Assembly: GCF_037042905.1 (NCBI RefSeq)
Contig: NC_087251.1
Location: 48,112,001-48,176,000, forward strand
Reading direction: 5' to 3'
DNA: 64,000 nucleotides
DNA from: Lytechinus pictus
Lineage: Eukaryota
A program made the position numbers and the translations under genes. Shown here one piece after another: positions 2,988 through 58,551 of the stretch (positions within the stretch are counted from its first letter, which is position 1; each line of letters opens with the position of its first letter). The notes beneath the pieces are model-generated. The model searched no databases. It saw nothing but the letters and a program-made list of their open reading frames with translations, and was not told the DNA's origin.

Positions 2988-4725
2988 CACTGCTGCAGCC
3001 GTTGTAGTGAATTAAGAATAGAATCCCAGGATTCTAAAAATGTTATAGATATCCAAGAACTTCAAAATGTACATTGTATACATAAAGCAAATAATAAAAG
3101 TCTTAAAACCCAAATGTAGATCCATCTTTATATTCTTTAAAAATCTTGTTTATTAAGTTCGAATGTCAATTTTGGGAAACGAAATTATTAAAAACAAATA
3201 CATATTTTTCTCAAGTTATTTGTTACAGATGTCTGTTTCTTTATAAGTACAGTCATTAAATAAAAAAAAAGGAATTTCTCCTATTAAGACATACGGTTAC
3301 ACAAGATGAGTTGTGAACCACATATCAACCTATTTTGCATAAAAGATTTATTTCATAGTCAATAAGAAAAATAAAAATCAAGACATAAATATTAGTCAAA
3401 TCATTCATTGCCATGGATTGTTCAAATCAAATTTCAGAAATAAATCACACGTGATATAATTGCAGATTTCCTGGAAGACAAATAAGTCTCCATGCGGTCA
3501 TTAGGTTAGAATTGCAAGCCGTAAATGTGACAAGAAGCAATTAGGAAAAGGTACTGATGTATACCTTCACATTGAGTTTCCTTTGGGAAAATCAATCATA
3601 AATCCGTAAAATGGCTATTCTCCCCATAAACTCTTGTTTCGATTACTGTCATGTTAAGTATTATTTATCATATTTCAAGACATACTAACAATGCTTGGAC
3701 AAGTGCAAGAATAATCTTAGGCTCAGTATGATAATTGTTTGACGAAGAAATGGAAATACATTTTTTTAAACATTGTTACAAAACCATTTTGATGCATCTT
3801 CCATCAGCGGACAAGAAGAACTTGTTATATTCATTGTTTAATGACAAAACTAATTACAATATGGTACAATTCCATCCATTAAGGTCCTTAGTCATTATCT
3901 AGAACCGTCGAAGAATATGAGACATTAGTCATTCATTAAAACGCTATTTCTCTGAGTTAACACTTTAATGAAGCATTACGTCATATCAAATTTAATTGGG
4001 CGAGATGTTGTCTCCCATAGTAGTGGATGTCCCCCGTAGAAGACGAGGTGTAATGCTGTCATAAATAGTTTATTATTTCACGAACATGTGGAATTGTATA
4101 TGTACAATAATGTCATCGCGATGATTATGTCATAAAATTTACATAAGTATTCTGCATTTCGGTGTAAGAAATGGTAACAATGTCTGTAAAAAGTTATATA
4201 CTGTATAGGGCGCCATTGAATAGGCAACTATAGATAATGGGCGCCTCATAAATGCTGTATATATATATTATCATTATTATTAGAGTCTTATTAATGTTGG
4301 ATTAAAAACAATCATGGAAAAAGATTTTGAGAATGTAAGAATCACTGTCGGGAGAGTGTGTTTTTTCTCACATTTTGTCTTTCATACATAAGATCTTCAT
4401 GACATGTTTATTAATCGAGTATCATCCAACCCCCACATCGCTTGATAATCTATGACAAACCAAACAAATATGAATGAAAAGTTGAAAATAATGATATCCC
4501 GTTCGTAAAGTTAAAGGAGATTATTACGCAGTACCTCTTTATCTTGATGCCCAACATGAAATAGTGAAATGAATAAAACCCTCAATACCTTTACAATAGC
4601 TTATCATCTATCATCCAAGGTTCTCTGAAAATAAAAATACACCACAATATGAATGATTTTGAAACTTACGAATAAACAGGCAAAAAAATGAAGGAAAAGG
4701 ACAAGAAAAAGAAAAGGTTTCTCAC

Positions 4726-31597: not shown

Positions 31598-32072
31598 TAC
31601 AATCTACCCAACAAGTTGCTAATATAAATATATATATATGTATTGATCAAATTTGTAATGATGTCAAATAATTCTTATTCCAGTTCAGCTTTATTTTAGG
31701 GCCGCGGAACCAGGGGTAGGTACTTTTTTCAAAACTGCGTACAAAAATGCAAAAAATGAAAAATTACCATCTGATTGTATTTTTTTTCCATGGTCAGCCC
31801 CATCTTCAAAATCGTTCTGCTGCCCCTCTATTTCACTTTTCACCTTTTTTACATTTTTATTGTTCTGACAAATCTACCGTGGTTGTATTCTTATAAAGGG
31901 TCCGGCCACATTGCACATGTACAATCAAGAAGGCTAACACCACAATAATGACATTTTTTAATAAGGGCGCAAATAGTGAACTATCATGATTTTCCTTCCA
32001 AAATTACCCTTCAAACTTCAAACTTATTCTTTATTTCAAAGGAGAAAGATGACGTAAAATATACTGAGAATA

Positions 32073-32137
32073 GTCATTTTGCCTCCGACGAAGATTCTGC
32101 TAGGATCGAAAGCTTAGGCCCCTTTTTGACTTTCTAA
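32073..32137 (+). ncRNA. Minimal type-I hammerhead-ribozyme-like cassette (Penelope-like element terminus)
   Basis: GCCT-CCGACGA-A-GATTCT-GCT-AGGATC-GAAA-GCTT-AGGC: stem I GCCT/AGGC, 6-bp stem II, palindromic stem III. Identical inverted copy at 46521-46585. Confidence 0.65.
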
Positions 32138-33529
32138 TAGTTATTTTAGTGTAGTTTATTATTTTACCGTTTTCATAATTTTACCAACGTGCACTTACAA
32201 AATCATTCTTTTTCATTATGAAATATTTCATTAATAAATTGTTAATGTTATCGGTCACAAGCCATTATCTCACAGAGATTTGAAATTTTCGGCAACCCAT
32301 TGGCATGCTGTGCCGGAGAATGCGACAAAAACAAGAGAACATAATTTCCCGTCACATGAATAGTGACAAGACCTGTTGATATTAATATATCATTAATTAA
32401 GGATATCGCAGTCAACAATATAAAACATTTCAATGCTAGTGTGAGAGGCGATCACAAAACATGGGGGAATTGATAAGTTGATGTGAGTAACATTCAGTGA
32501 AAATCATACAAATATTTGCAATTGTATCGGCAGTAAGTCAACACCTGAATACAGTTACTATCGAATTTAATTCTACATAGCAAAACGCCTCACTTAATTT
32601 GGTTACGTGTGAAAGGGACTCTCATTGACTAAGCGCAACCTTTTTTAAAAATATATATTGAAACACAATGAGTACCCTTTTATCAATGATTTTAATTTGT
32701 TGGCCAAAGAAAGGATTGTAATTTAATTTTCCGTGATACATGGTGAGGAAAAGTCTGCCGTCTGTTTTGCTATGTGCCATGACGTTTTAAAAGAAATTAC
32801 GTTCCTTAAATTTTAAATCCGATTACGGAACCTTGGTCTCCGCAATGAAGTAGTTCAACATGTTCAGACGTAGAAAATTGCCTTGATACGTGATTTGGGT
32901 GAATTTTCTCTCGCCTATACTTTCAAAAATAATCTACTTAAACTTTATTTTGTTAATATAAAAAGAGTATCATAATTTGTTTCTGAATGCATCCCTTTTG
33001 TGTACTGTGAATGTCGATTTAAATGGTGTGCCGCAATCGTATAAAGACTCAAACCATGAATTATATTACGTTGCTTTGATAATATTAATACAAGGTGAGC
33101 TTAGCGGGAGTTTCATTATTGAATCGCAGTTGTTTGGTCTCGGTAGAAATTAAATAGATCTGCTTGTCGCTCAATATTAACGATATCAATCAAGATGGAT
33201 GAAAAGTATTATGTTCAGTAGCAGTAATTTCACATGGATCATATTCCATTGATTTCGGAGGTGTCTTCTTAATTGACTCAGTTGAACATCTAGCAGAATA
33301 TTTACAAAATTAAAAGGAACGTAGGACGAAAATAATCAGGGTCATCTAAATGATATTTATCACTCATACCTTTAAATTGCCAAGAACTTCCGATTCCACT
33401 TTATGCCGGATAAACACTAACAAGCAGAATTACATCACCAACTCTCGTAGCTTACAAGCTTTATGCACCTTTAATGGTGCAGTGCAGTCCGCATCGTAAA
33501 GAGTGCAGCGTATAGTACTTTTTAAGGAA

Positions 33530-33697
33530 CACACTTAAAATGTTGGGCAACATACTGTTCACTGTGTTGGGTAATGTATGTTGGTAAAAAATATATATTC
33601 TGGGCAAATATTATCAAATCGAGCAAATTTATTACCCAATTATTAGTTTTTATTACCCAATTTGGACAGATTTTAACCAATAGTTGTGCGGACAGTA
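33530..33697. mobile_element. Truncated copy of the 39256-39481 MITE
   Basis: CACACTTAAAATGTTGGGCAACATACTG... is colinear with 39256. Followed by another CACTCTAAAA end and a SINE-like tail (about 33760-33856, AGCGCTTTG...AAAGCGCTATA). Confidence 0.75.
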
Positions 33698-34357: not shown

Positions 34358-34614
34358 CAATGTTAGTGTAGGCCTATTCCGTTATGAAATGAATGACGGG
34401 TTAAACCATAACCAGGAGCACAAATAGAAAGATGTTAAATAAAAATATTCTTCAATAACTTTATATACATACATGCAATTCTAATCAATTTCCATGATAG
34501 GTGTTACTTTATCTCCAAAATAAATAGGTTATTTTGCGATTGGGTGTTATGTTGTAAAACGAGCTTTAAATAGGTAACAAGGTATTCAATGATACTAGTA
34601 GTTACCTTATTTAA

Positions 34615-35209
34615 AGGGGAATCCAGCCTTGGCCATAAAATGTTGTGTTGGGAAGGAGAAAAATAGATTAAACAGAATGGTGAAAGTTTAAAAGAAATCA
34701 GACAAGCTATAAGAAAGTTATAGCTGCTTTAAAATTGAGATCACTAATACTATGTAGATTTCAAATTGGCAACTGGGTAAGTAAATTATTACAAGGGGCA
34801 AGGACAACTTTCCCATAGGCCATGTACTTTATTATCAGGGATTTGTGGTTTTCTCTTAAGTACCCATTCCCCTGGGGCAGTAATCTAAATATAACCCAGG
34901 TAGTATATTGTTTTATGTCCTCATGAAAGAAAAATATAATTTGAAATAAAACTTTTAGGAAAAATGACATTTTAGCCATAATATGTATTGGAGTACATGG
35001 AAGAGTAGTCCTTGCCTTACATCACTATGACATCCCATATGCGGCCAATTTGAAGTCCCCATGGGTATAGTGATTACCAATATTTACAACTTTTACAAAT
35101 TCATAACTTTCTTGTTGTTTGTCCAATATTGTTGAAACTTTCACCTATCAACTTGTCTGATTTTTCTTTTCCTTATAAAAACAAGTTTTTATTTGGGTTG
35201 GATTCCCCT
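34615..35209. mobile_element. Kolobok-like non-autonomous element (TTAA TSD)
   Basis: TTAA|AGGGGAATCCAGCC...GGTTGGATTCCCCT|TTAA. Highly similar inverted copy at 43072-43655. Confidence 0.9.
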
Positions 35210-38200
35210 TTAAACACATAGATGAATCATAATAGCAGTTACTGCTATCATTAATTCTGAGAGTGAGAGTGACTAAGCAAATGTGATATTCGATAGCCTT
35301 GCAAGCAAAGCCAGTATTAAGTCGTGAAAATTCAAGCTTGGGTAAAAAAAAGTATGTAACGCTTTTTTTTTCCGGACAATCCTAAATACCCAAGACGCCA
35401 AGAACATCTTTAGCAATACACCCTCCCGGCGATTTCCTGTTCTAGAGTCTTGTATTGGCAGTAGAATACACATCTTATCCAGTGTCTTGCCGCGGGGAAT
35501 CGAATCATAGAGACTTTGTGTGCACCCTATAAGGCAGCTATTTGAAGTTGAAATGGGTGGTGAGATTAGATGAGACTTTAAATGGAATGAAGACGTTGAC
35601 AGTAACATCGTAATCCTAAGGAGGTTTTGTAAAGTTCGGTGTAACATGGAAATTGTAAGTGGAGGTAGGATGTGGTGGACTTCTTGATATTTTGGTGCCA
35701 AGCGAACCGTACATTTTTCATCCCGTTTGATTTATTCATTTTTATTTCTAGAGCGTTAGGGAGAGGGGGGGGGGGTCTGTCTGGCGCCCTTGCCATTACT
35801 CACTTCTTATTATGAAATCAAGCCCATGAGCTTAGAAAACGTGAGTGGAATGTGTGAAATCATGTTATTCCTTTGATATTATATGAGAAACACAAGTAGC
35901 ATGCTCAATCAAATGTATTCAACGATGTGCCCGAACTAAGATATATACATGCATTCATTTGTTTTTCTGAATTTAACTAGCTTCGGCTCAATCGAAAAAA
36001 CAACAGTTTCCGGTCTGACACTTTGCGGTGAACACACTGGCATCACTCAACAAAACATAATATAAACTGTGTTTGCAATTCAAACTCATTTTAATTGTTT
36101 GATTTTATCAATGTTTTACTTTCATATCTGATCAATAAACAGTTACAGCTCTCCTTTCAACCAGCCGGGCATATGCACACTTATTGAGTTACGGAGCAGC
36201 GGTTCATTAAAGTTCTCGGAAGAATAAATATTATGAAGGAGAGCGCAAGAACGGTTTTCGCATCGGTTCGGAACGAGCAAGTCAAATCAAGTAATTTGAA
36301 ACTCCTTCTGTTTATAGTCTGTCAGCAAAATAAATGTGATTTTGCATCATTTTAGAATAAACGAGTAGTTACCAGCAAAAAAACATTGAAGATACCATCA
36401 ATTTTCCACCGGAAAGTAGAGTTCCTCTCTCTCTCTCTCAGCCAAGTAATTAAGCTTTGGAATGGCGTGTGTACGTAGAAGAGCCGGGTTTGCAAATCTG
36501 TGTGGGTTTTTTTTTGTTGGGAAGGGGATTCGGTGTTAGGTTTTTTTTTCCCTTTCCTCTTGAAAATGTTCAATCAGAGCTTGTGGTTTCTTCTTAATAT
36601 ACGAGTAATCTATACTTCTGAAACAGAGAAAAATAATATAGTATGAAGCAGACGATAAAACTTACCCCTAGCATTACTAGTGGTAGTTCGACCATGACTG
36701 TTATATTGTCATGGGAACTAAACGTGCTATGAAAATGAAAATAAACGTTTCCTTGGAAGCTACCATTCATCAGCAAGTTAACCTGACTGGTAAAATAAAT
36801 GCCGCGAGGCAGTAGTGTTAATACTATTTCAAAGGTTTTATGCTTGAGTAGTATCAAGCGATTGATTTGATTATCTTAAAGTATATCATAACTGTGATTG
36901 TCATTTGCGAGATTAGATTACCTGCCATATTTGATTCACGACACAGTAAACTGCTGTAAGGAATAATATTTAGATATGGATTTGACATTTTAAAATTCTG
37001 TTTGAAGAGAAAGGGGCGGGGTATTCAGCCCCCAACCGATCCCCATTGGCTGTGCTCATTTAACCTGCTCGTAGTCAATGCCTTTATTTTACTTTCACAT
37101 GTCTTTTTGTAATATCACTGGTAAGCATTGTTCACGAAAATTTAATCTCATTATTCATTCATATACTTTTATATAAAGTAAAAATTGATTTTTCAATTAC
37201 CAATTGTTTTTGCACATCCGTTATAAATAGAAAGACTTGGAAAGCAAATGTTAGAGATGCACAATAAGAGACAATTTAGATAAGTCGCACACACCTCACC
37301 AAATCCTTTAAGTAATCTTGTATTCAGCTTATTACTACTTCATCATGCCTATAAAACGTACATCGAATCTTTACAATTGGTCCTTATACCACCACAGGCA
37401 TGTATTAGCCCTATTCTTACCGCCTGTCCGATATACAGGCATGAATGTAGCCTGGAAAATAAATAACCTTTGGAACTTGGTGAATTGTTTTTTAATCAAG
37501 TCCCCCATTCACTTCTTAGCATCCCTCTATTTTATCTCGCAAGATGACAAAGTGCAGGAAATTGGAGTTTCGCCGGAATCAATAAAAACGTCATAGGTAT
37601 ATGCTTGGGGTCTGATTAAAACTTTTTTTTTAATTCGTCGCCAATCGAGATGTTATTGAATAATTTTCCATCCATTGTACAAGTATCGATGAGGATATTG
37701 AAAGACGCCATCGTTAAATGGCGCCGCACAATTGCCCCTTAATTATGAAAAATATGTGAAGGCGTATCCAGAAGCGGGGGCACGCACTACGTGTTTCCGG
37801 GTTAAAAAGAACAAAACTTGAACACGATTTATCCTTTCATATTTCATTTTTTCACTCTAAAAATGACTGACTCATTATTGGGATAAAAGGGAATAATATG
37901 TAGGTTCTACGAAATGATATAATGCTTTTTGTTGCCCAACAAACATACATGTTCACCTTACCCCAATATTGGGTAGCTTTTTATTCAATCTCTTTGTATA
38001 GCGTTCCCTTTTTTCATTTTCTTCACATGTCGGAGAGGGTATATTGACAGGTAAGTTGTTCCATCTTCTTTTAATTTCACAATTGTTTTAAAAGATTTAA
38101 ATTGTCCTGATTTAAAACTTGTATCTTTGATTTGAAAATGCTTTTAAGGAATGTTGAAGCTTATTTTGCATTTTTCTAATATGTAATACAGAGCCCTCTA

Positions 38201-39255
38201 AAAATGCATTTTTTATGTACTAAACAGGCCACCCTGTCTAAATAAATAAGTGAATAAATAATTAATCAAGTTAATGTCCGAATTTAATCTAATCTTATTT
38301 GAATTACTATTTCGGGACCAGAATATTTTATTTATTTTTGTATAAATACACAACAAACAAGCTGAATATTATTTTATAAGTGGTGTTAATACAATTACAA
38401 TCGTTTCTCGTTCTCTTAAACTGCTATCTCAATGTACCAGTTTGGGTGAGTAGTTTGTTGGTATATTATTGTATTGTATATTTATTTCTATTTTTTTCAA
38501 TGTGTTATTATTATTTGGAAAGCTTTTACCAGGTGTATTTCCTCTCGTAAAAAATAATGGTATTATGATTTTATTTGGATTTTGTACCTTTGTTCGTTTA
38601 TTTATAACATATGTTTGTTTTTGCAATTACTAATAAAATACAATGAAATAAAATTAAACTAGACTTAACTATCCAACTATCTCAGATACACAAAGTTGTC
38701 CATGAAAATGAAACAAAACTCAAATCTTCCTATCCCTCTTCGTCATTCATCTTCTTCTTCAAACAAGTCAGTTAATAAATTACTTTCCCCCGTTGGTGCT
38801 TGAGAAATCGAGTGTACATAATTAGTATAATCTGAAGAGTTATTACAACATTAGAATAAAGAGTGTCTCATTAATACTCAATCTATAACAAGCTTTATTC
38901 TTATCTGACCTGAAAGCATATTACACTATGGAAATCGACCAAATTCGCTATCATAATGAATAACGACGTTTACCATGAGTGTATTCTAACAATGATGAAT
39001 GCATTCTTACAAGGATATTAACACTGGTATAATTGAATAAGCTCATCTATACGTAATAGAAACAATTTATTTTATCGCAATGATATTCTTAAGAAAGACA
39101 CATTAAACATCTTAAATAATGAGGAACAAATATTAAAGAGTAATACGAAATACAAAGAACAATTTTCTATATTTCTGGGTTTTATTTGTGAAAAATAATT
39201 ATTTGTAGGATAAGCTATTTCAAGCAAAATTTGTATTCTAACTAAAAACTAACTA

Positions 39256-39481
39256 CACACTTAAAATGTTGGGCAACATACTGTCCACTGTGTTGGATGA
39301 TGTATGCTGGTAAAGCATATATATATTATGGGCAATTATTATCCAATTGAGGAAAATTTATTACCCTATTATTAGTTTTTATTATTCAAATTGGGAAGAT
39401 TTTAACCAATAGTTGTGTGGACAGTATGTTGCCCAGGGTTAGATAAAAGTTGGGCATTTTTGCCCAACTATTTAAAGAGTG
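39256..39481. mobile_element. CAC-terminated MITE with TA flanks
   Basis: CACACTTAAAATGTTGGGCAA / TTGCCCAACTATTTAAAGAGTG. Confidence 0.8.
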
Positions 39482-40552: not shown

Positions 40553-43071
40553 TTCCTGAGTTGTTGTCCAAGTTGATGAAGAATGCATTGATTAAATGAC
40601 ATCGATATATATAAGTTTGGTTGCAACGCATTATTATCAGATCGATACTGGTTCAATTTGATAGATGAACTATATATTCTAGGGTTAGTTCACTTCCATA
40701 TCAACTCAACGAGTAGAATGTTTCAACCTGTTAGAGACATCAATTCTTATCTCAGTTTTATATAAACTCCAAGTTGTATTTCGGAATTATCTCTTTTATA
40801 ACCAAGGTCTCGACGTTACAGCTTTCTTTTTCTTATAAGCACACTTTTTTTTCAGATAACCTTCTGCTAACAAATAGCGGCATGATTCAGTAGTGGATTT
40901 AGTAATGAAAACATCTGGAAATGAATGGAATGATGCGGTACGTATCCATGTGGCGTGATCAGTTGAAAATTTTGAAGGGCACAATATGGCGCCCCCCATC
41001 TACAGTCGTGATATTACCGATGTTTATTTTGGCAAAGTATATTGCATGTTATTGCAATATTTGATACGTATTTCATATATTGAACGTCATTGACATTCGC
41101 CAATATTCTGAAAAGAAACATTTACCATATTGGGCTTCAGAATTTGCCTTCCCAATCAGTGCTAGATCTAAATCAATGGGTTCTTCTTGAAAGCCCCTCA
41201 CGCACAATCACGCAGGTTAATATTCGATGACATCATTCAGAAAGCCAGTGAATGAAACAATATTGGTTCACAATATAGTGCAATATCCATAGATGCTGTA
41301 TCAATAGCTCCAGAAGACACAAATGACGTCACACGATACATTAGAAAACGCTATTGACACGATTGAATGAGGAATTGCACTTCCCAGTCTGGATCCGTGT
41401 AGTACTACGTGAGAAGACTAAAAATAGAGATCAATCCTGGATTTCAATCCCTCCTCCAGAACCGGAAGATGCAATAAAATGAGGGAACAGTGACGCGATC
41501 GAGATTTTGGTTTTGTGTTATATTTAAGTACAAAAATGGAGATTACAAATAATGTTTTGATATCAATACTCAGAAAGATACGAATACATCGCTCTATTTA
41601 GAACCTTTGATATGATGGTTCTGTTCTTCTGTTTGCTGATTCTGAGATGGGCAATATAATGTAAAGTTCGGAAAGAAAACAAACGACAAAAAGCGTATAA
41701 GTCAAAGAGGGCTCGGGGAATTTTGTGGCAACAACTTATATCGAGGGTTAAGAAATAACCATAACTCTTGGCACAAATACACACACACACATGCACACAA
41801 AACCCTCACACGCAAAGTGTTTTCTCACATATCCTAACTGCTTGTTATTACAACTTAGGAGCGCTTGTTTTTTTCTCTATTGTTCTCCCGTCCTCAGAAG
41901 TCTGTTGGAGTAAAACTCAACTAACATTTGATACAGGTTTGTGACAGAGGACTTTATCTGATGCCCTCACTTATACTGAAAATAGAAACCACACGTGACA
42001 CAGCTAATTTATGCGGAGTTCTCTCCATTCTGCAATGGTTGATTATCTTCCCTTGGAGAAAGATGGAGTCCGAAGTTCGACTATTTTTTTTTTTACTATT
42101 TCTGTACCAAAGGTATTACTTGCATATATTTTTCATAGTATGTTTGAATATTTTAACAATATATTGCTTAACAATGTAGGGGATTATGAAAAATAACATC
42201 GATGAAGGTCGTGTGAACCATCAACATCAACAACAGTTTGTAAATATAGGGGTTGGCCGACAGTTCGGAAACCAAGGCACGTACTATTTTCACCGGAAAT
42301 TCTTCGAAAGTGTGATACAAGCTACACCGTGTCTGCTCAGTGGCGTGTATTTTTTGGCAGATTCGCCGCTCCAGAGGAAGTGCACTGGAAATATGCAAAT
42401 GGTAACCAAAATTCTGGAAACAATTTAGAAGAGAAAATTGAATTAGAACCTTCAAGGAACCGGCGAGATGGAATAACAGCTAATTCAAGTGAAATGTAGC
42501 ATACGGAACCGTGGCTGAATAGATTTTGCGCTTCGTGGTTGATAAAGAAGAAAACAGAAAGAGACCTCTTCCTTAACCTATTTAGACGTCGGTCCGTCAG
42601 GTTATATAGAAATAGATTCGCTGTGTCACCAAACACCACGGTTAGACGACTTATTGTATCCAATCTTTTGGTACAGCGAACTTTCAAAGTTATTCATTTA
42701 GCATTTACACGAAGAGTGTCCGCTCACGAGATTGCGTTTTCTATTTCATCTCCCTCTAAAGTGAATATCACTACTGCCAGTTCTAAAGTGCTTAAACAAG
42801 CAACTTTTCCTTCTTTAAAGTTTCATTGTACTATAGTTTCCGAAATTTGCCCTTTCGTTTCGTCTACGCTTCCCTTCCGGCTTAGACATGTAAAAATAGA
42901 TACATGAAACATTTTTTGTTTGGTTTTGTTTATGTTCTAAATGTGTAATTGCAATGGACTTCTTACGGGAAAACATGAAAATATTGCTCAATCAGATCTG
43001 AAATATAAAGGTTTGATTTTCAATCCAAGAAATTAGCTTACAAATATTGAAATGCAATTATTATCTATTAA

Positions 43072-43655
43072 AGGGGAATCCAACCCAAATAAAAACTTGT
43101 TTTTATAAGAAAAAGAAAAATCAGACAAGTTGATAGTAGAAAGTTTGAACAATATTGGATAAACAACAAGAAAGTTGTGAATTTTTTCAAGTTGTAAATA
43201 TTGATAATCACTATACCCATGGAGACTTCAAATTGGCCGCATATGGGATGTCATAGTGATGTAAGGCAAGGACTACTCTTTCATGTACTCCAATACATAT
43301 TATGGCTAAAATGTCATTTTCCCCAAAAGTTTTATTTCAAATTATATTTTTCTTTCATGAGGACATAAAACAATATACTACCTGGGTTATATTTAGATTA
43401 CTGCCCCAGGGGAATGGGTACTTAGGAAAAAACCACAAATCCCTGATAATAAAGTACATGGCCTATGGGAAAGTTGTCCTTGCCCCTTGTAATAATTGAC
43501 TTACCCAGTTGCCAATTTGATATCTACATATTATTAGTGATCTCAATTTTAAAGCAGCTATAACTTTCTTATTGCTAGTCAAACTTTCATCATTCTGTTT
43601 AATTTATTTTTCTCCTTCCCAACACAACATTTTATGGCCAAGGCTGGATTCCCCT
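43072..43655. mobile_element. Kolobok-like non-autonomous element (TTAA TSD), inverted relative to the 34615 copy
   Basis: TTAA|AGGGGAATCCAACC...GGCTGGATTCCCCT|TTAA. Confidence 0.9.
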
Positions 43656-44609
43656 TTAAGTATCAACATCTTTATGTCACTATGTAAATAAGAGCTGTAT
43701 ACAAAAACAAAAATGTTTTGAGCAAAGTCTAAATAGTACAAGAATACTCCATTTTGTGGTTCTATTTCTAATTCCCTTGGGAGTAAAGTACGTTTAGAAA
43801 ATACCTCTATAAAACCACATAATTTATAACTCCATGGGATTAGTCATGATTCATTCATAAACCACAAAGCTAGACCCTTGTGAGGATTTTTGTTTTCAAT
43901 TTTTTTTAACGAAAGCTTGAAGAAAAATGTTCAGTGATAGAAAAAACTGTGACTATATTTCGGAATTCAAAGCCTCTTTTTGTATGGCGTTCTGAATATG
44001 CATTTTTTTCATTTAGAAGCGGTTGTGATACGAGCTATAAGTTTCTACTTTTTCTATACTTGAATTATAGAAAATACACTTCTCTCAAAAATTCCTAGAC
44101 AATTTTTTAAAATAGTTGCTTAATATACGATTAGAATAATAAGATAACATGTCGTTAGGTTAAGCAGATATTTCTTTATCACACATCATCATAATTAACA
44201 AAACTGTAGCTGAAAGAAAAACATCGTAGCAGCTAATCTACAAAATAAAGTTTTGCCAATTTTCAATCAAGAATTTCGTTTTTTAGTATGAAAGTTCCTG
44301 TACCTGTTTATTTAAATTTTGCTCTGAGATCTGTTATCAATTTTTGTTTGCTTTTGATTAAATTTGGAGTTTCATTTTTCATCTAGCTATCGCTTGAAAG
44401 ACAGGGGAATGTCATTTTTGTCATCACTTTTGTAGAAAATGTTTAGTGGCATATGAGAAGTTAAAATTTATTTCATCCATTATGCATTTCATCGTATTAA
44501 AATTATATAGAACTGGGCCCATTTCATAAAAAAAAAAAAGAAATTGAGTGACAGATTCTGTCTAGAGAATCGAAATAATTACTGGGATTTAATTGCGTTT
44601 CAGTCTCCC

Positions 44610-44826: not shown

Positions 44827-46520
44827 CTTTTATTGAATTTCGATGTCATTGACCTCAATTATCTCTATACCCACTTTTTGAAAGAAGTGATTATGCATTT
44901 ATGTAGGAGCGTGATAAACTTTTTCATAACAATTCTATTCTTACTTTTACCGTACATCCCACTGATCATCGTGTGTGTGTTTTATGTTCATGTACTGTGT
45001 TTGCGTGGGTTTACCCTCAATGTTTTTTTTTTTATCTTACTTAAACCACGGACGCCCGAAAAGTGGGGGTGTCCCCGATACAGTAAACCATAGCAGTTTC
45101 ATAGACAATGCATAATCCGTAAAAAGACACCATTAGGCCGATCAATCACACACTGAATGTATGGCGTTATGAAGTGTCCCAGGATTATGCTTGAATTCAA
45201 AATTTCGAGCGTTTAATATTGAACACACAGATTCCCCAATTTAGGTTGTATAAAATAATTCGCTTCTCCTCTAATACTTAACACGATTCTGTGTGAGGGA
45301 ATATAAAAAGTTATCTAATTTAGTTCAAATACTTTCCTCGTATCTATTGGTAAATATGACATTATGAAATCAACATGAAACTCACGATTTCATATCCTGA
45401 CAGGGGATTCTTTACCTTTATGGTCATAAGAGGATCATCCTACAGCTAATATTAGAAATATGATACGGCTCTTAAGTCATCTCCCTATTTACATTGCCAT
45501 TAATACAACAATGAACTTCAAGCAACATGAATATTAATACATGGGTAGAAGAGTTGTAAAGCAGAATAGCATAAGCTGTGAGTGTACACACGGTCACTTA
45601 CCTTTTTCGCATCATCGACGCTACTGATCGTCAGGTATAGATATTTTAAAGAATTCTAAATGATTATTTAAATTGTCTGTAAATTATTGATCTTGAGTTC
45701 GAGCTGGGCTACCATGACATGTCTTCGGTTTCACCTTCTCTACTACAAGAACGCAACTTGTAACTTTTTATACATGTAAATGTCACTGGAATTTTAAAGA
45801 TTTCTCCGTTTAAACCAAATGTCATTGAATACATGTCGGAATATATTTCTTAATTATTGATCACATTGACTTTGTAATGTCCATTGTTTGTGCAGTGATG
45901 AAAGGGTGGCAATATTTAGTTTTTACGTATTCAATAATAAACATACACAGTTTTAGTCTGGTCTCATTTGCATACTTAATGAGCGTTCCCTATTCTACCT
46001 GCTCCACTGCGCCATTGCGGAACGCAAAGTTTTTAATAAATCATGCTCGTAAGCCACTAAGCATAAACTATTAGAAATAATTTCAAATGTAAAGTGAATC
46101 AAACTTCGGTTCTATACAAAATAGGAGTGGCACTTAGCCGTACACAGTCAGGCCCATCTTATGTTTAATTTGGAATAAACCCGATAAAAATTATCAGACA
46201 CGTCTGGAAAATAGAATTCATGTTGGCTGAATCTAAAATATGATAACGCTGCTTCTATCGAGAATCTTATTCCCTTGAGGTAAGTTTGAGGTATATGCTT
46301 AATTCGACCACAAGGACTCGATATCAGAGGTAACTTACTGTCCATTAATGTAGAGCACGGTTTGTTTTATCACAAAATGTGTGAAAATATCTTCTTTTTT
46401 TGTGTGTGTATCTAATCCCTATCTTTATCTCATTCTACAATTCGACGGAAAACGTTTTCGTTATCAAATACATTGTATAGTGAAGTACTTGATACGAAAT
46501 GTATTAGTAAATTTATTAGT

Positions 46521-46592
46521 TTAGAAAGTCAAAAAGGGGCCTAAGCTTTCGATCCTAGCAGAATCTTCGTCGGAGGCAAAATGACAAACATA
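46521..46592 (-). ncRNA. Second hammerhead-like cassette inserted with a 13-bp TSD
   Basis: 46521-46585 is the exact reverse complement of 32073-32137. TAAATTTATTAGT occurs at 46508-46520 and 46593-46605. Confidence 0.7.
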
Positions 46593-47029
46593 TAAATTTA
46601 TTAGTAATATACAAATAGACTGAGTGTATTACGTCATCCACTCTCTCATTAATATGGTGTATACCAACCAATGCGAATGTCATGCTTCTTGTTTCCTTTT
46701 TCTTTTAAAGGAATATTTGATATTATTCATTTAAATGGACAATACGGTCTCAGGTTAAAGGGAAATATACCCCTAACAAGTTGATTTGCATAAACAGAGA
46801 TTAAAAAAATAAATAAATAAACAAGCGCAATGCTGAAAATTTCATCGCCGTTGTTGTAACCTGTTGAATTCAATCAAGAGGGCCCTTGTCATATTTGCAT
46901 CAATAACAAAAAACAATAAGGGAATATTCTTTACAGTGAATTTTATGTGACATTCGACACATTATTTTGGAGAGGTACCCTTAAATTTGTGCCTCTTTCA
47001 TAAACAAATATTTTCTGATAATGTCAATT

Positions 47030-55742: not shown

Positions 55743-57661
55743 GGCGTGTGGTGAGGGTCGAAAACTCTGAAACAAAACAGATTTGAGTTAGATAGTCATG
55801 ATCAAAGGGACATGAATAATACCTTTGACAAGTATTCTCGGGTGTCCTTCGTGACACTTTGCACTCATTCAAGGATGATCTATCGTGGAGCAGTAAATGA
55901 ATATCAAGTGTTTATTTCAAAAATGAGAAAAGATATTGCATAAGCTCGAAAGAAACATTGTCATAACCATACTCCTGATGTTTTTTATGGGTATGTGAGT
56001 GTGTGGGGTAGGCTCATTAAAGTGGATTAAGAAGATACAATATGCTCAAAATCCAGATTGGGTAAATTATTTCCTGGCTTCCCTCTCCCCATCAAATCTT
56101 TTCCGCCATTAAAGGGACAGGGGGCGAGGTACATTGCCCTATCACTCACTAAAATTGCGGCCATGGATATAATACCATCGACTCTTGTAAAATGTAGATA
56201 GAAGAATGATTGATGAGGCGGTATTTGGGGGAAAACAATCTTTTTCGCGCTCAGGATGGAACCAGAGACAGTGTTTTAATACTGATTACGAGAGCCGAGA
56301 CAAATATCCTCAAAAAGTTTGATGCAACCGAAGAAGGGTTGTTTAATGTGAACAAACTACGGGCCCCCAAGGCGATGCAAGAAGTGGCGTCTGTTTTAGG
56401 AATCTCTTCGTACATTATCATTCCAAGATGTGCTATCAAGTTGCAGTACAGTCGCCAATGACAGAAAATGTTGTCTTAAAATGTTTTCTCTCCTTTCCCG
56501 TAATAACGTGCAAAACATCCTGACATCATTCGATCGAAAAAAGCATTATAATAAGGAATAGTATTAGAAATTAACATACAGACAACCATGGCTCTCGGGA
56601 ATAATCAACCATCGAACGTGAATTCGGTGAATAGATGCATGTTTACCGAAAACCAATTACGTGGTAAAATAAGTTGAGCGGTATGTGACTTGAGCAAGCA
56701 CATAAAGTTCAAATTGGCACAGTTAACAGAACTAGAATAAGTGTTCATCGTTTAATTATATATATAGAAGTATATAAAGTAAAATGTGCTTATTGGTGAC
56801 AGAGAAATACTAAAATCGCAGCAGCTTTTTAAAATTTATCTTTTGAAAACTTAAATCAGACATATTTGGATAAATTTGGCACCGCATCATGAACAATCAC
56901 ATTCGTCATCAATATTTTCTCCTCTTCTATCTTTCAACCTCTATTCCTAAACGTATAAGCAATCTTCAAAACGTTACCTTTTAACAAGAATGTATAGTTT
57001 CTGATAAGTACATGGACGATGAAATATTAAATATGATTAAGTGTAAAAAAAAGTTGAACTGGATGATAAAAGTTAATATTTGTTAAAATTCTATCAGAAT
57101 GGGACTGCTGACTGTTCTGGCCCTTCGGGGAAGTTGCATATGGGGAGGGTTCAGGTGCAGAGGTTCGGGAGGTTTTTTTTTAATATTTTTTATTGGGATC
57201 CGTTTTATGATTGCCTTGGTATTGCGTTGCACGATATATCGGTTGAAAAAATCTCTTCTTTTTATATTGAGATTTTCGCCACGTTTTAGCAAAAAGTAAT
57301 TTTTACATCGATTTTCCCAGCGTTTATTTGTCATTATAACTTTATTACAATCTTATGGAGTTGAATATCCGATACCAAATTTCCACTGGGATTACGGAAG
57401 TTGAAACTAGCCACGAAAAAAGTGACAAAAATCATATCACGAAATCTTAAGAGGTTTATATTTATCGATTTTCAAGATATTGTCTAATTATACTAGCGAT
57501 GCGGAAGCAGAAACTAATTTGCTGCTGCGAGGTAACTGTAAAACAAAAAGAAAGTGAGGAGCACTAGTTATTCATAAAATCATCAATCGAATTTCGAAGC
57601 TGGGGTATAGTCCCAATATATATGAAGTTAACAGCGTCAAGAATTATATCATGTATTTACG

Positions 57662-57703
57662 TTTTCCCTGATGAAGGGGAAGGACCACCGAAAATTTAGA
57701 AAA
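57662..57703 (+). ncRNA. Degenerate minimal hammerhead-like motif
   Basis: TTTTCC-CTGATGA-A-GGGG-AAGGA-CCACC-GAAA-ATTT-AGAAAA: canonical core, palindromic stem III, imperfect stems I and II. Confidence 0.45.
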
Positions 57704-58551
57704 TATAATTATTTGGAATTGACATTCAATGCAATCGAGTCAACATAAATTATATTGGATAAAAATATGACATAGGCTTGAAAGAGAGGAAATACCTAAC
57801 ATGCCTAAGAATGCCGATTCTTGGACATCGTAAGACGGTAAAGGTTGATGGTATCTGTCAGAGAAGGTATATGCATATCAGTCAATTAGTGTCAAAATTG
57901 AGATGATTCCCTTGTCCTGTCGCTTTGTGACCTCGTATTGTAGATACTATCGCATTATAATGGTCATGCGATGCGGTCCAGTCAGAATTAGTGATGACAT
58001 TTTGTGGCATTGTCCAAACTGTCAAAAAAAATGCTGATACATTCCCTTACCCGTCACTCCTGATATGAACTCATCGATATCATTAGAGAAAATTAAGTGG
58101 TGCATAGATACGTGGTGTGCATTTGATCATTTTTATTATTATTCTTATTTTCTTTTTTTTATTGGGGTGGGGTGTAATTTAACTATCGTGATACGAATAT
58201 ACTATCTTGCTGCTGGCTTACAATATACGGGGGACGGTAGATCCTTGCTCAATCTTATGTTTTGTGCTATTTTCGTCAGAGGAACATTAAGCCACTGAAC
58301 AGAGAAAACTTTAATGACGGTAACATTGATAGCCGAAATTATGATAATGACAATGATAATAATGATAATAATGTTATGATTATAATTTACTGTCAACATG
58401 CAAGACTAAGAAGAACCGGTAAATTTGTTCAAAAACTGCCAGATCACAAAATGTGGTGAGGGAGTAAAGAATATGTTAAAAGAGCTAGAAATGTGCAGCA
58501 AATTTTGATATACAGGCACTTCTACAAGCAATTATATATAGTTTCGTCATA

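Follow-up and report, generated by a model that had tools for sequence, protein, structure and literature searches.

A 65-nt hammerhead cassette in Lytechinus pictus is the terminal module of a young Penelope-like element with a C4 core

The 65-nt hammerhead-like cassette that occurs twice in a 64,000-nt stretch of Lytechinus pictus DNA (the window) is the 3'-terminal module of a Penelope-like element (PLE) and not an independent mobile element. The element itself is young, autonomous and present in very high copy number. The evidence below makes it likely that this module, whose master-copy state has C in place of U at hammerhead core position 4, is inserted into the genome in 65-nt form as a strong-stop-like cDNA, with no visible part played by hammerhead cleavage.

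Copy 1, on the forward strand at 32073-32137, is a solo terminal module that is 100% identical to the family consensus and matches positions 4244-4308 of a full-length copy of the element (L049:3506-7813). It starts exactly at the first base of the unit, G1, and carries neither upstream 3' UTR sequence nor a tail. Copy 2, on the reverse strand at 46521-46596, consists of the 65-nt module (46521-46585) and 7-11 nt of the element's 3' UTR; it gives a 76-nt alignment to positions 4233-4308 of the full-length copy, and its upstream limit is at 46592 or 46596. The two 65-nt units, 32073-32137 (+) and 46521-46585 (-), are 100% identical. A clean 13-nt target-site duplication (TSD), ACTAATAAATTTA, flanks copy 2 on the reverse strand (3'-side copy at 46508-46520, 5'-side copy at 46593-46605), and the last 4 nt (TTTA) of the 5'-side copy are microhomology that overlaps the element sequence. 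Copy 2 is thus an ordinary, extreme 5'-truncated PLE copy. Copy 1 has an ambiguous duplication of no more than AATAG (32069-32073 and 32136-32140), because GTCATTTT is the element's own sequence in every copy. The proposal of a TSD with microhomology at copy 1, made in an earlier reading of this DNA (the sequence-only reading), holds only in part: the 12-mer that it cites takes in the element's first 8 nt. Both copies are surrounded by non-coding, non-repetitive DNA, and no other part of the PLE was found in the 64,000-nt window. The two are independent target-primed insertions.

Other repeats were seen in the window. A pair of ~600-nt inverted repeats (34608-35213 and 43068-43662), 96% complementary and 7.9 kb apart, sits between the two hammerhead copies and probably represents two copies of another transposable element. 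Direct repeats of ~170 nt with ~90% identity (33529-33697 and 39255-39426), 5.7 kb apart, belong to another dispersed repeat.

The full-length copy at L049:3506-7813 is ~4.3 kb long and is flanked by a 9-nt TSD, CCTTGAATC. From 5' to 3' it contains the 65-nt unit, a 57-nt stretch, a 5' UTR, a 911-amino acid ORF (L049:4140-6875), a ~0.94-kb 3' UTR, and a second 65-nt unit, so that the hammerhead lies ~570 nt upstream of the ORF. The ORF product matches the RVT_1 profile above the cut-off (E = 9.7e-9, 35.7 bits), which identifies a reverse transcriptase (RT) domain. Matches to the GIY-YIG profile PF01541 (E = 1.5e-4, 22.5 bits, and E = 8.8e-4, 20.0 bits, the second E value being that of the L049 ORF) just missed the Pfam cut-off of 22.6 bits, but the endonuclease motif VYLITC...YIGET is visible downstream of a CX4CxxC linker, and we assign a C-terminal GIY-YIG domain to the protein. 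The CX4CxxC motif suggests that the linker may be of the Neptune/Nematis type. A ~157-nt internal duplication is present in the element's 5' UTR (L049:3822-4133), and the DNA just outside this copy, on its upstream side, contains a ~117-nt tandem repeat (L049:2621-3159).

This 911-amino acid ORF bears out the proposal of a young Penelope-like family, made in the sequence-only reading, and provides the linkage to RT and GIY-YIG ORFs that the reading had suggested looking for. The copy number, which that reading had suggested counting, is more than 1000 in the genome (1236 for an exact 39-mer). When 30 loci were fetched, the 65 nt were preceded by a common sequence in most of them and ended in TTTCTAA in all. 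The extended loci revealed a 5'-truncation series, adjacent head-to-head inverted partial copies, and the ORF with the GIY-YIG motif. Truncation is strongly 5', with 268 first-look candidates for the endonuclease region versus 1111 for the 3' end, and a longer upstream pseudo-LTR is present in 20 of 25 full-length 5' regions. Pseudo-LTRs, inverted 5'-truncated neighbours and steep 5' truncation thus all mark this family as a PLE, and a partial-tandem arrangement with a pseudo-LTR is usual in these elements (PMC8557442).

The 3' end of the family also has the PLE form. Copies can end at either of two points, of which TTTCTAA (32131-32137, + strand, in copy 1) comes first and is a putative internal RT start site. 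In 232 copies (~19%) it is followed by a 57-nt tail, and these copies end in TTTTTGC(C). The tail is identical to the first 57 nt of the element's internal region, as in the PLE "tail" that was described as the interval between two internal RT start sites (PMC11167929). In the opposite direction, 799 of ~1027 copies continue at least 6 nt upstream into the element's 3' UTR. The view of the cassette as a tiny retro-insert therefore stands in part: a discrete class of ~62-65-nt, TSD-flanked solo units is real, but the cassette is the 3'-terminal module of a 4.3-kb element.

The hammerhead architecture of the unit is described here for copy 1, with all positions on the forward strand. The 5' strand of helix I, GCCT (32081-32084), pairs with AGGC (32116-32119), and this helix has a potential outer extension, GTCA/TGAC (32073-32076 and 32127-32130), seen in the sequence. 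The core box CCGACGA (C3 C4 G5 A6 C7 G8 A9; 32085-32091), in which U4 is replaced by C, is followed by an extra A (32092) between A9 and G10.1. Helix II is a hairpin of GATTCT and AGGATC with a GCT loop (32093-32098 and 32102-32107); it has 6 bp, including one G.U pair, and retains the G10.1-C11.1 pair. The GAA of G12, A13 and A14 (32108-32110) precedes the loop-less palindrome AGCT of helix III (15.1, 15.2/16.2, 16.1; 32111-32114) and U17 (32115), directly after which cleavage is predicted. The minimum-free-energy RNA fold of the unit gives exactly the described helices, with helices I and II both formed (-12.2 kcal/mol), and the unit has no extra stability over shuffled sequence (z = -0.35). 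When two units were co-folded with RNAcofold, helix II was extended between the molecules; this prediction is silent on a helix III dimer. The stems, core, GAAA, AGCT palindrome and predicted cut are all where the sequence-only reading had placed them.

That reading had also assigned the motif to the PLE-type minimal hammerheads with a palindromic helix III, and the architecture agrees with the published description of this class. PLE minimal hammerheads have a short helix I, a long helix II, an extra nucleotide between A9 and G10.1, and a G10.1-C11.1 pair; their 15.2-16.2 positions are palindromic and helix III is small or absent, which implies that they act as dimers (PMC4209133). All of these ancillary features are present in the 65-nt unit. 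Compared with the strict hammerhead core (C3 U4 G5 A6 N7 G8 A9, G12 A13 A14, A15.1-U16.1, H17), the unit fits at every position except U4. The motif is thus a PLE minimal hammerhead homologue that fails strict membership at one defining core position. The Rfam hammerhead models gave no match, either across the whole window at the gathering score or locally at E ≤ 10. This silence is uninformative because these models likewise miss a canonical-core minimal hammerhead at L023:2369-2416 in the same genome.

Two other candidates were set aside. A weak Rfam match to CRISPR-DR65 (32131-32167, E = 0.13) is an AT-rich chance hit. A different hammerhead register, with its cut at GUC|A near the unit's 5' end, allows, by inspection, no helix I hairpin between that site and the core box. 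Elsewhere in the window, a degenerate minimal-hammerhead-like motif (57660-57705, + strand) forms poor helices, although it has a canonical CTGATGA, GAAA and an AATT palindrome, and may have been left behind by a different PLE family.

To establish the status of the C4 core, exact copies of the 39-mer and of its core variants were counted in the 811-Mb genome. The CCGACGA core was found in 1236 copies, CUGACGA (CTGACGA) in 18, CCGAUGA (CCGATGA) in 16, and CUGAUGA (CTGATGA) in 1, so that position 4 is C in 1236 of the 1271 exact copies. Both core C positions lie in CpG, and the two single variants are similarly rare. For these reasons, we interpret the U4 copies as products of CpG-to-TpG decay and C4 as the master-copy state of this PLE family. 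The claim of the sequence-only reading that the change of U4 to C is a family trait rather than decay is upheld by the 1236 CCGACGA copies versus 18 with CTGACGA. The sole copy with the canonical CUGAUGA core (G000:C14:3183466-3183504) lies in a full-length 5' region and arose by two CpG-to-TpG changes; here, decay makes the consensus core.

A hammerhead search that tolerates U4C, as had been suggested at the outset, was performed with a generic minimal-hammerhead pattern that allowed C or U at position 4, with the reversed pattern as a control. It gave 2792 genomic matches versus 16 for the control, a ~175-fold enrichment. Among the first 100 matches (contig C1), we recognized at least six other minimal-hammerhead families, all of them with CUGANGA cores, so that among these matches C4 occurs only in the PLE family described here. 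The other families have AGCU or ACGU in helix III and A or C as the bulge, and, judged by eye in the same 100 matches, they differ considerably in the sequence of helices I and II while keeping the strands complementary. Within the C4 family itself, the copies are near-identical and too similar to display covariation. Relative to the literature cited here, the fixation of C4 in so successful a PLE family is new.

The ends of the genomic copies were used to ask where their templates began. Boundary counts were taken from exact pattern counts rather than aligned copies. For each unit position tested, a copy was counted when its preceding base was not the consensus base, and the counts are lower bounds for 5' ends. 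By this measure, 136 copies have 5' ends before G1, 70 before T2, 41 before C3, and 104 before A4, so that at least 351 of ~1250 copies start within the 4-nt stretch GTCA at the unit's 5' edge (positions 1-4); the consensus T precedes G1 in 891 copies. The base before G1 is not random: among the first 100 listed copies of the G1 class, it is G in 73, A in 19 and C in 8, where 26% G is expected (p = 1.6e-22). This extra G is confined to G1 and is absent at the A4 peak. The G-preceded copies among the fetched loci are genuine short inserts with 8-14-nt TSDs and sometimes a few filler bases. A further cluster of 5' ends, immediately ahead of the core box, was considered and rejected, since only 19 copies have 5' ends before T12 and about half of these can be explained as C-to-T changes. 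Some solo 65-nt units also occur as head-to-head inverted pairs that meet at G1, with 0-7 nt between the two (for example L006, G000:C3:41896223-41896357, and L022, C2:29442334-29442448). In the pairs among the listed copies of the G1 class, the base before G1 is usually alike in both units (G/G or C/C).

No such clustering was found at the predicted cleavage site. Only 2 copies have 5' ends before A44, the first base past the cut, and 14 possible ends at the cut (base after CUU other than A) include 9 A-to-G changes. None of the 25 full-length 5' regions that could be examined starts at the cut; all of them hold the 5' half of the unit. These boundaries argue that the templates would have been uncut at the predicted site and that hammerhead cleavage has no visible part in making the genomic copies. 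The sharply defined solo-module class with an extra 5' G and the boundary statistics for uncut templates are likewise new relative to the literature cited.

These results bear on the proposal that the C4 hammerhead is a working ribozyme, one that cleaves as a dimer in vivo and processes PLE transcripts with C4 either tolerated or tuned. We consider this unlikely. More than 1200 copies retain C4 together with the entire motif, and the architecture is conserved across families, but conservation among the copies reflects youth and not selection, and no class of copies starts or stops at the cut. The U4C change occurs naturally in a viroid hammerhead that functions in vivo, although its activity in vitro is considerably lowered (PMC3088659). 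PLE minimal hammerheads are slightly active as dimers in vitro, but they are poor catalysts even when the core is canonical (PMC4209133). A cut in the 3' pseudo-LTR would also strip the RT start sites from the body of the RNA. As a ribozyme, the C4 core thus probably has little or no activity; some activity may persist, because the natural U4C viroid hammerhead retains enough of it in vivo (PMC3088659).

The model that we favor, in which the 65-nt inserts are strong-stop-like cDNAs of an uncleaved PLE template, can be outlined as follows. Reverse transcription would begin at TTTCTAA or 57 nt further on, these start sites being deduced from the genomic ends, and would then copy through the intact hammerhead region. 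It would next either go on into the 3' UTR, with variable truncation, or end 62-65 nt upstream at a discrete point, which may be a real RNA 5' end, most likely a transcription start in the pseudo-LTR. An RNA initiated in the pseudo-LTR would carry the RT start site twice. If the RT used the 5'-proximal site, the 65-nt strong-stop-like inserts would result; if it used the distal site, the result would be full-length copies of the L049 type. The extra G at G1 could be a copied cap or an end-dependent untemplated addition. A uniform cap-copying explanation is incomplete, because the extra G is seen only at G1 and not at the A4 peak, and GTCA is not the sole template 5' end, because 20 of the 25 full-length copies extend upstream of G1. 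As an alternative for the discrete end point, an identical boundary pattern would be expected if the RT halted where a protein-bound hammerhead domain begins.

The unit contains TCATTT at positions 2-7 and GGATC at +28 to +32 from A4. We take the first to be Inr-like and the second to fit the DPE consensus RGWYV, which would be weak hints of an internal promoter. In Penelope, the pseudo-LTR holds the transcription start and an internal promoter of the Inr/DPE type (PMC2377424). Under the strong-stop model, cleavage at either hammerhead would leave the RNA body without its 5' end or without the RT start sites, and for this reason a weakened catalytic core would be no handicap to the element. 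A broader possibility, which we regard as doubtful but worth stating, is that the 65-nt module serves as a compact multi-purpose control unit that would combine a transcription start in its first bases, an RT start in its last, and between them a hammerhead fold switched off for catalysis by U4C and used as a platform for the RT complex, with the 62-65-nt inserts as strong-stop-like cDNAs. A cut would then detach the cap as well as the RT start sites from the rest of the RNA.

The origin of the solo units could also be sought in recombination between the 65-nt direct repeats of full-length insertions, which would make them solo pseudo-LTRs. This fits with the L049 copy, which is bounded by exactly the 65-nt repeat and a TSD, so that recombination would leave the unit between two TSD copies. 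Such a history is nevertheless very unlikely, since a 65-nt repeat with nothing further upstream is present in at most ~5 full-length copies, compared with a minimum of 136-351 solo units. Recombination would also have had to act on repeats of only 65 nt and, in a nearly mutation-free family, within little time, and the head-to-head solo pairs at L006 and L022 are not recombination products.

The sequence-only reading had offered a retrozyme-like family as another possibility, and in this form the 65-nt cassette would be a tiny non-autonomous element that is released by self-cleavage, perhaps circularized, and mobilized in trans. A discrete class of TSD-flanked ~65-nt inserts exists, and a 2026 preprint traces animal retrozymes to PLE pseudo-LTRs (10.64898/2026.07.22.740005), but we judge this origin to be highly improbable. 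The predicted cut is internal (position 43 of 65), so that a unit released by cleavage would be permuted, and no permuted unit was seen. No tandem repeats were found around the copy; across the genome the copies lie scattered, and those close to one another form inverted pairs rather than the tandem arrays of retrozymes. In addition, the unit agrees with the 3' end of the 4.3-kb element at all of its positions, and most copies (799 of ~1027, as above) continue into that element's 3' UTR. Finally, that the resemblance to a hammerhead is a coincidence in a retrotransposon 3' UTR is scarcely credible: the unit has no Rfam hammerhead match even at E ≤ 10, a fold no more stable than shuffles and one core position off consensus, but Rfam is also silent on the canonical core at L023:2369-2416, the generic motif exceeds its control ~175-fold, the motif lies in the pseudo-LTR end, exactly the PLE hammerhead site, and all of the ancillary minimal-hammerhead features are present (PMC4209133).

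The role of hammerheads in PLEs is an open question, as Naiads that lack them proliferate (PMC8557442) and PLE mutants with a catalytically dead hammerhead still insert in vitro (PMC11167929). The family described here amounts to a natural experiment on this question, with more than 1200 near-identical copies, a change in a near-invariant catalytic base, and boundaries of the kind left by uncut templates. It supports the view that the element needs the fold rather than cleavage, or that the motif is a passenger. The sharp 5' end with an extra G provides a testable handle on where the PLE template RNA starts relative to the internal RT start site. For genome annotation, 65-nt "ribozyme cassettes" of this kind are PLE end-fragments.

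Among known systems, the metazoan PLE minimal hammerheads (Cervera and De la Pena 2014, PMC4209133) share the location of the motif, in the pseudo-LTR and 3' end of an element with RT and GIY-YIG domains, and the occurrence of thousands of mostly solo copies that derive from truncated elements. They also share the 4-bp helix I, long helix II, unpaired nucleotide between A9 and G10.1, G10.1-C11.1 pair, and loop-less palindromic helix III that implies dependence on a dimer. The core differs, being CCGACGA with C4 in the present family, whereas the variant core reported in that study is U3-A8 and not C4. The same C4 substitution, at the same core position, is found in the viroid U4C hammerhead (cited in Perreault et al. 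2011, PMC3088659), but that ribozyme, part of a replicating RNA, is a full type III hammerhead that makes tertiary contacts, whereas the present one is minimal, dimer-dependent in design, DNA-encoded and fixed in more than 1200 genomic copies.

The arrangement of the 3' end resembles the PLE tail system (Frangieh et al. 2024, PMC11167929) in its two 3' ends, in an optional extension that equals the start of the internal region, and in a hammerhead beside the RT start sites on templates that appear uncleaved. In contrast to that system, the tail is 57 nt long rather than the usual 30-40 nt, the hammerhead does not overlap the start of the ORF but lies ~570 nt before it, and the positions at which the RT starts are deduced from genomic ends. 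A discrete 5' end within the terminal repeat is shared with Penelope of D. virilis (Schostak et al. 2008, PMC2377424), although the promoter reading offered here draws on genomic 5' ends and weak consensus matches only. Metazoan non-LTR retrozymes are also short hammerhead-bearing sequences related to PLE pseudo-LTRs (10.64898/2026.07.22.740005); they are tandem repeats of a few hundred nucleotides that give circular RNAs, whereas the 65-nt unit is dispersed, single and colinear with the end of its parent element.
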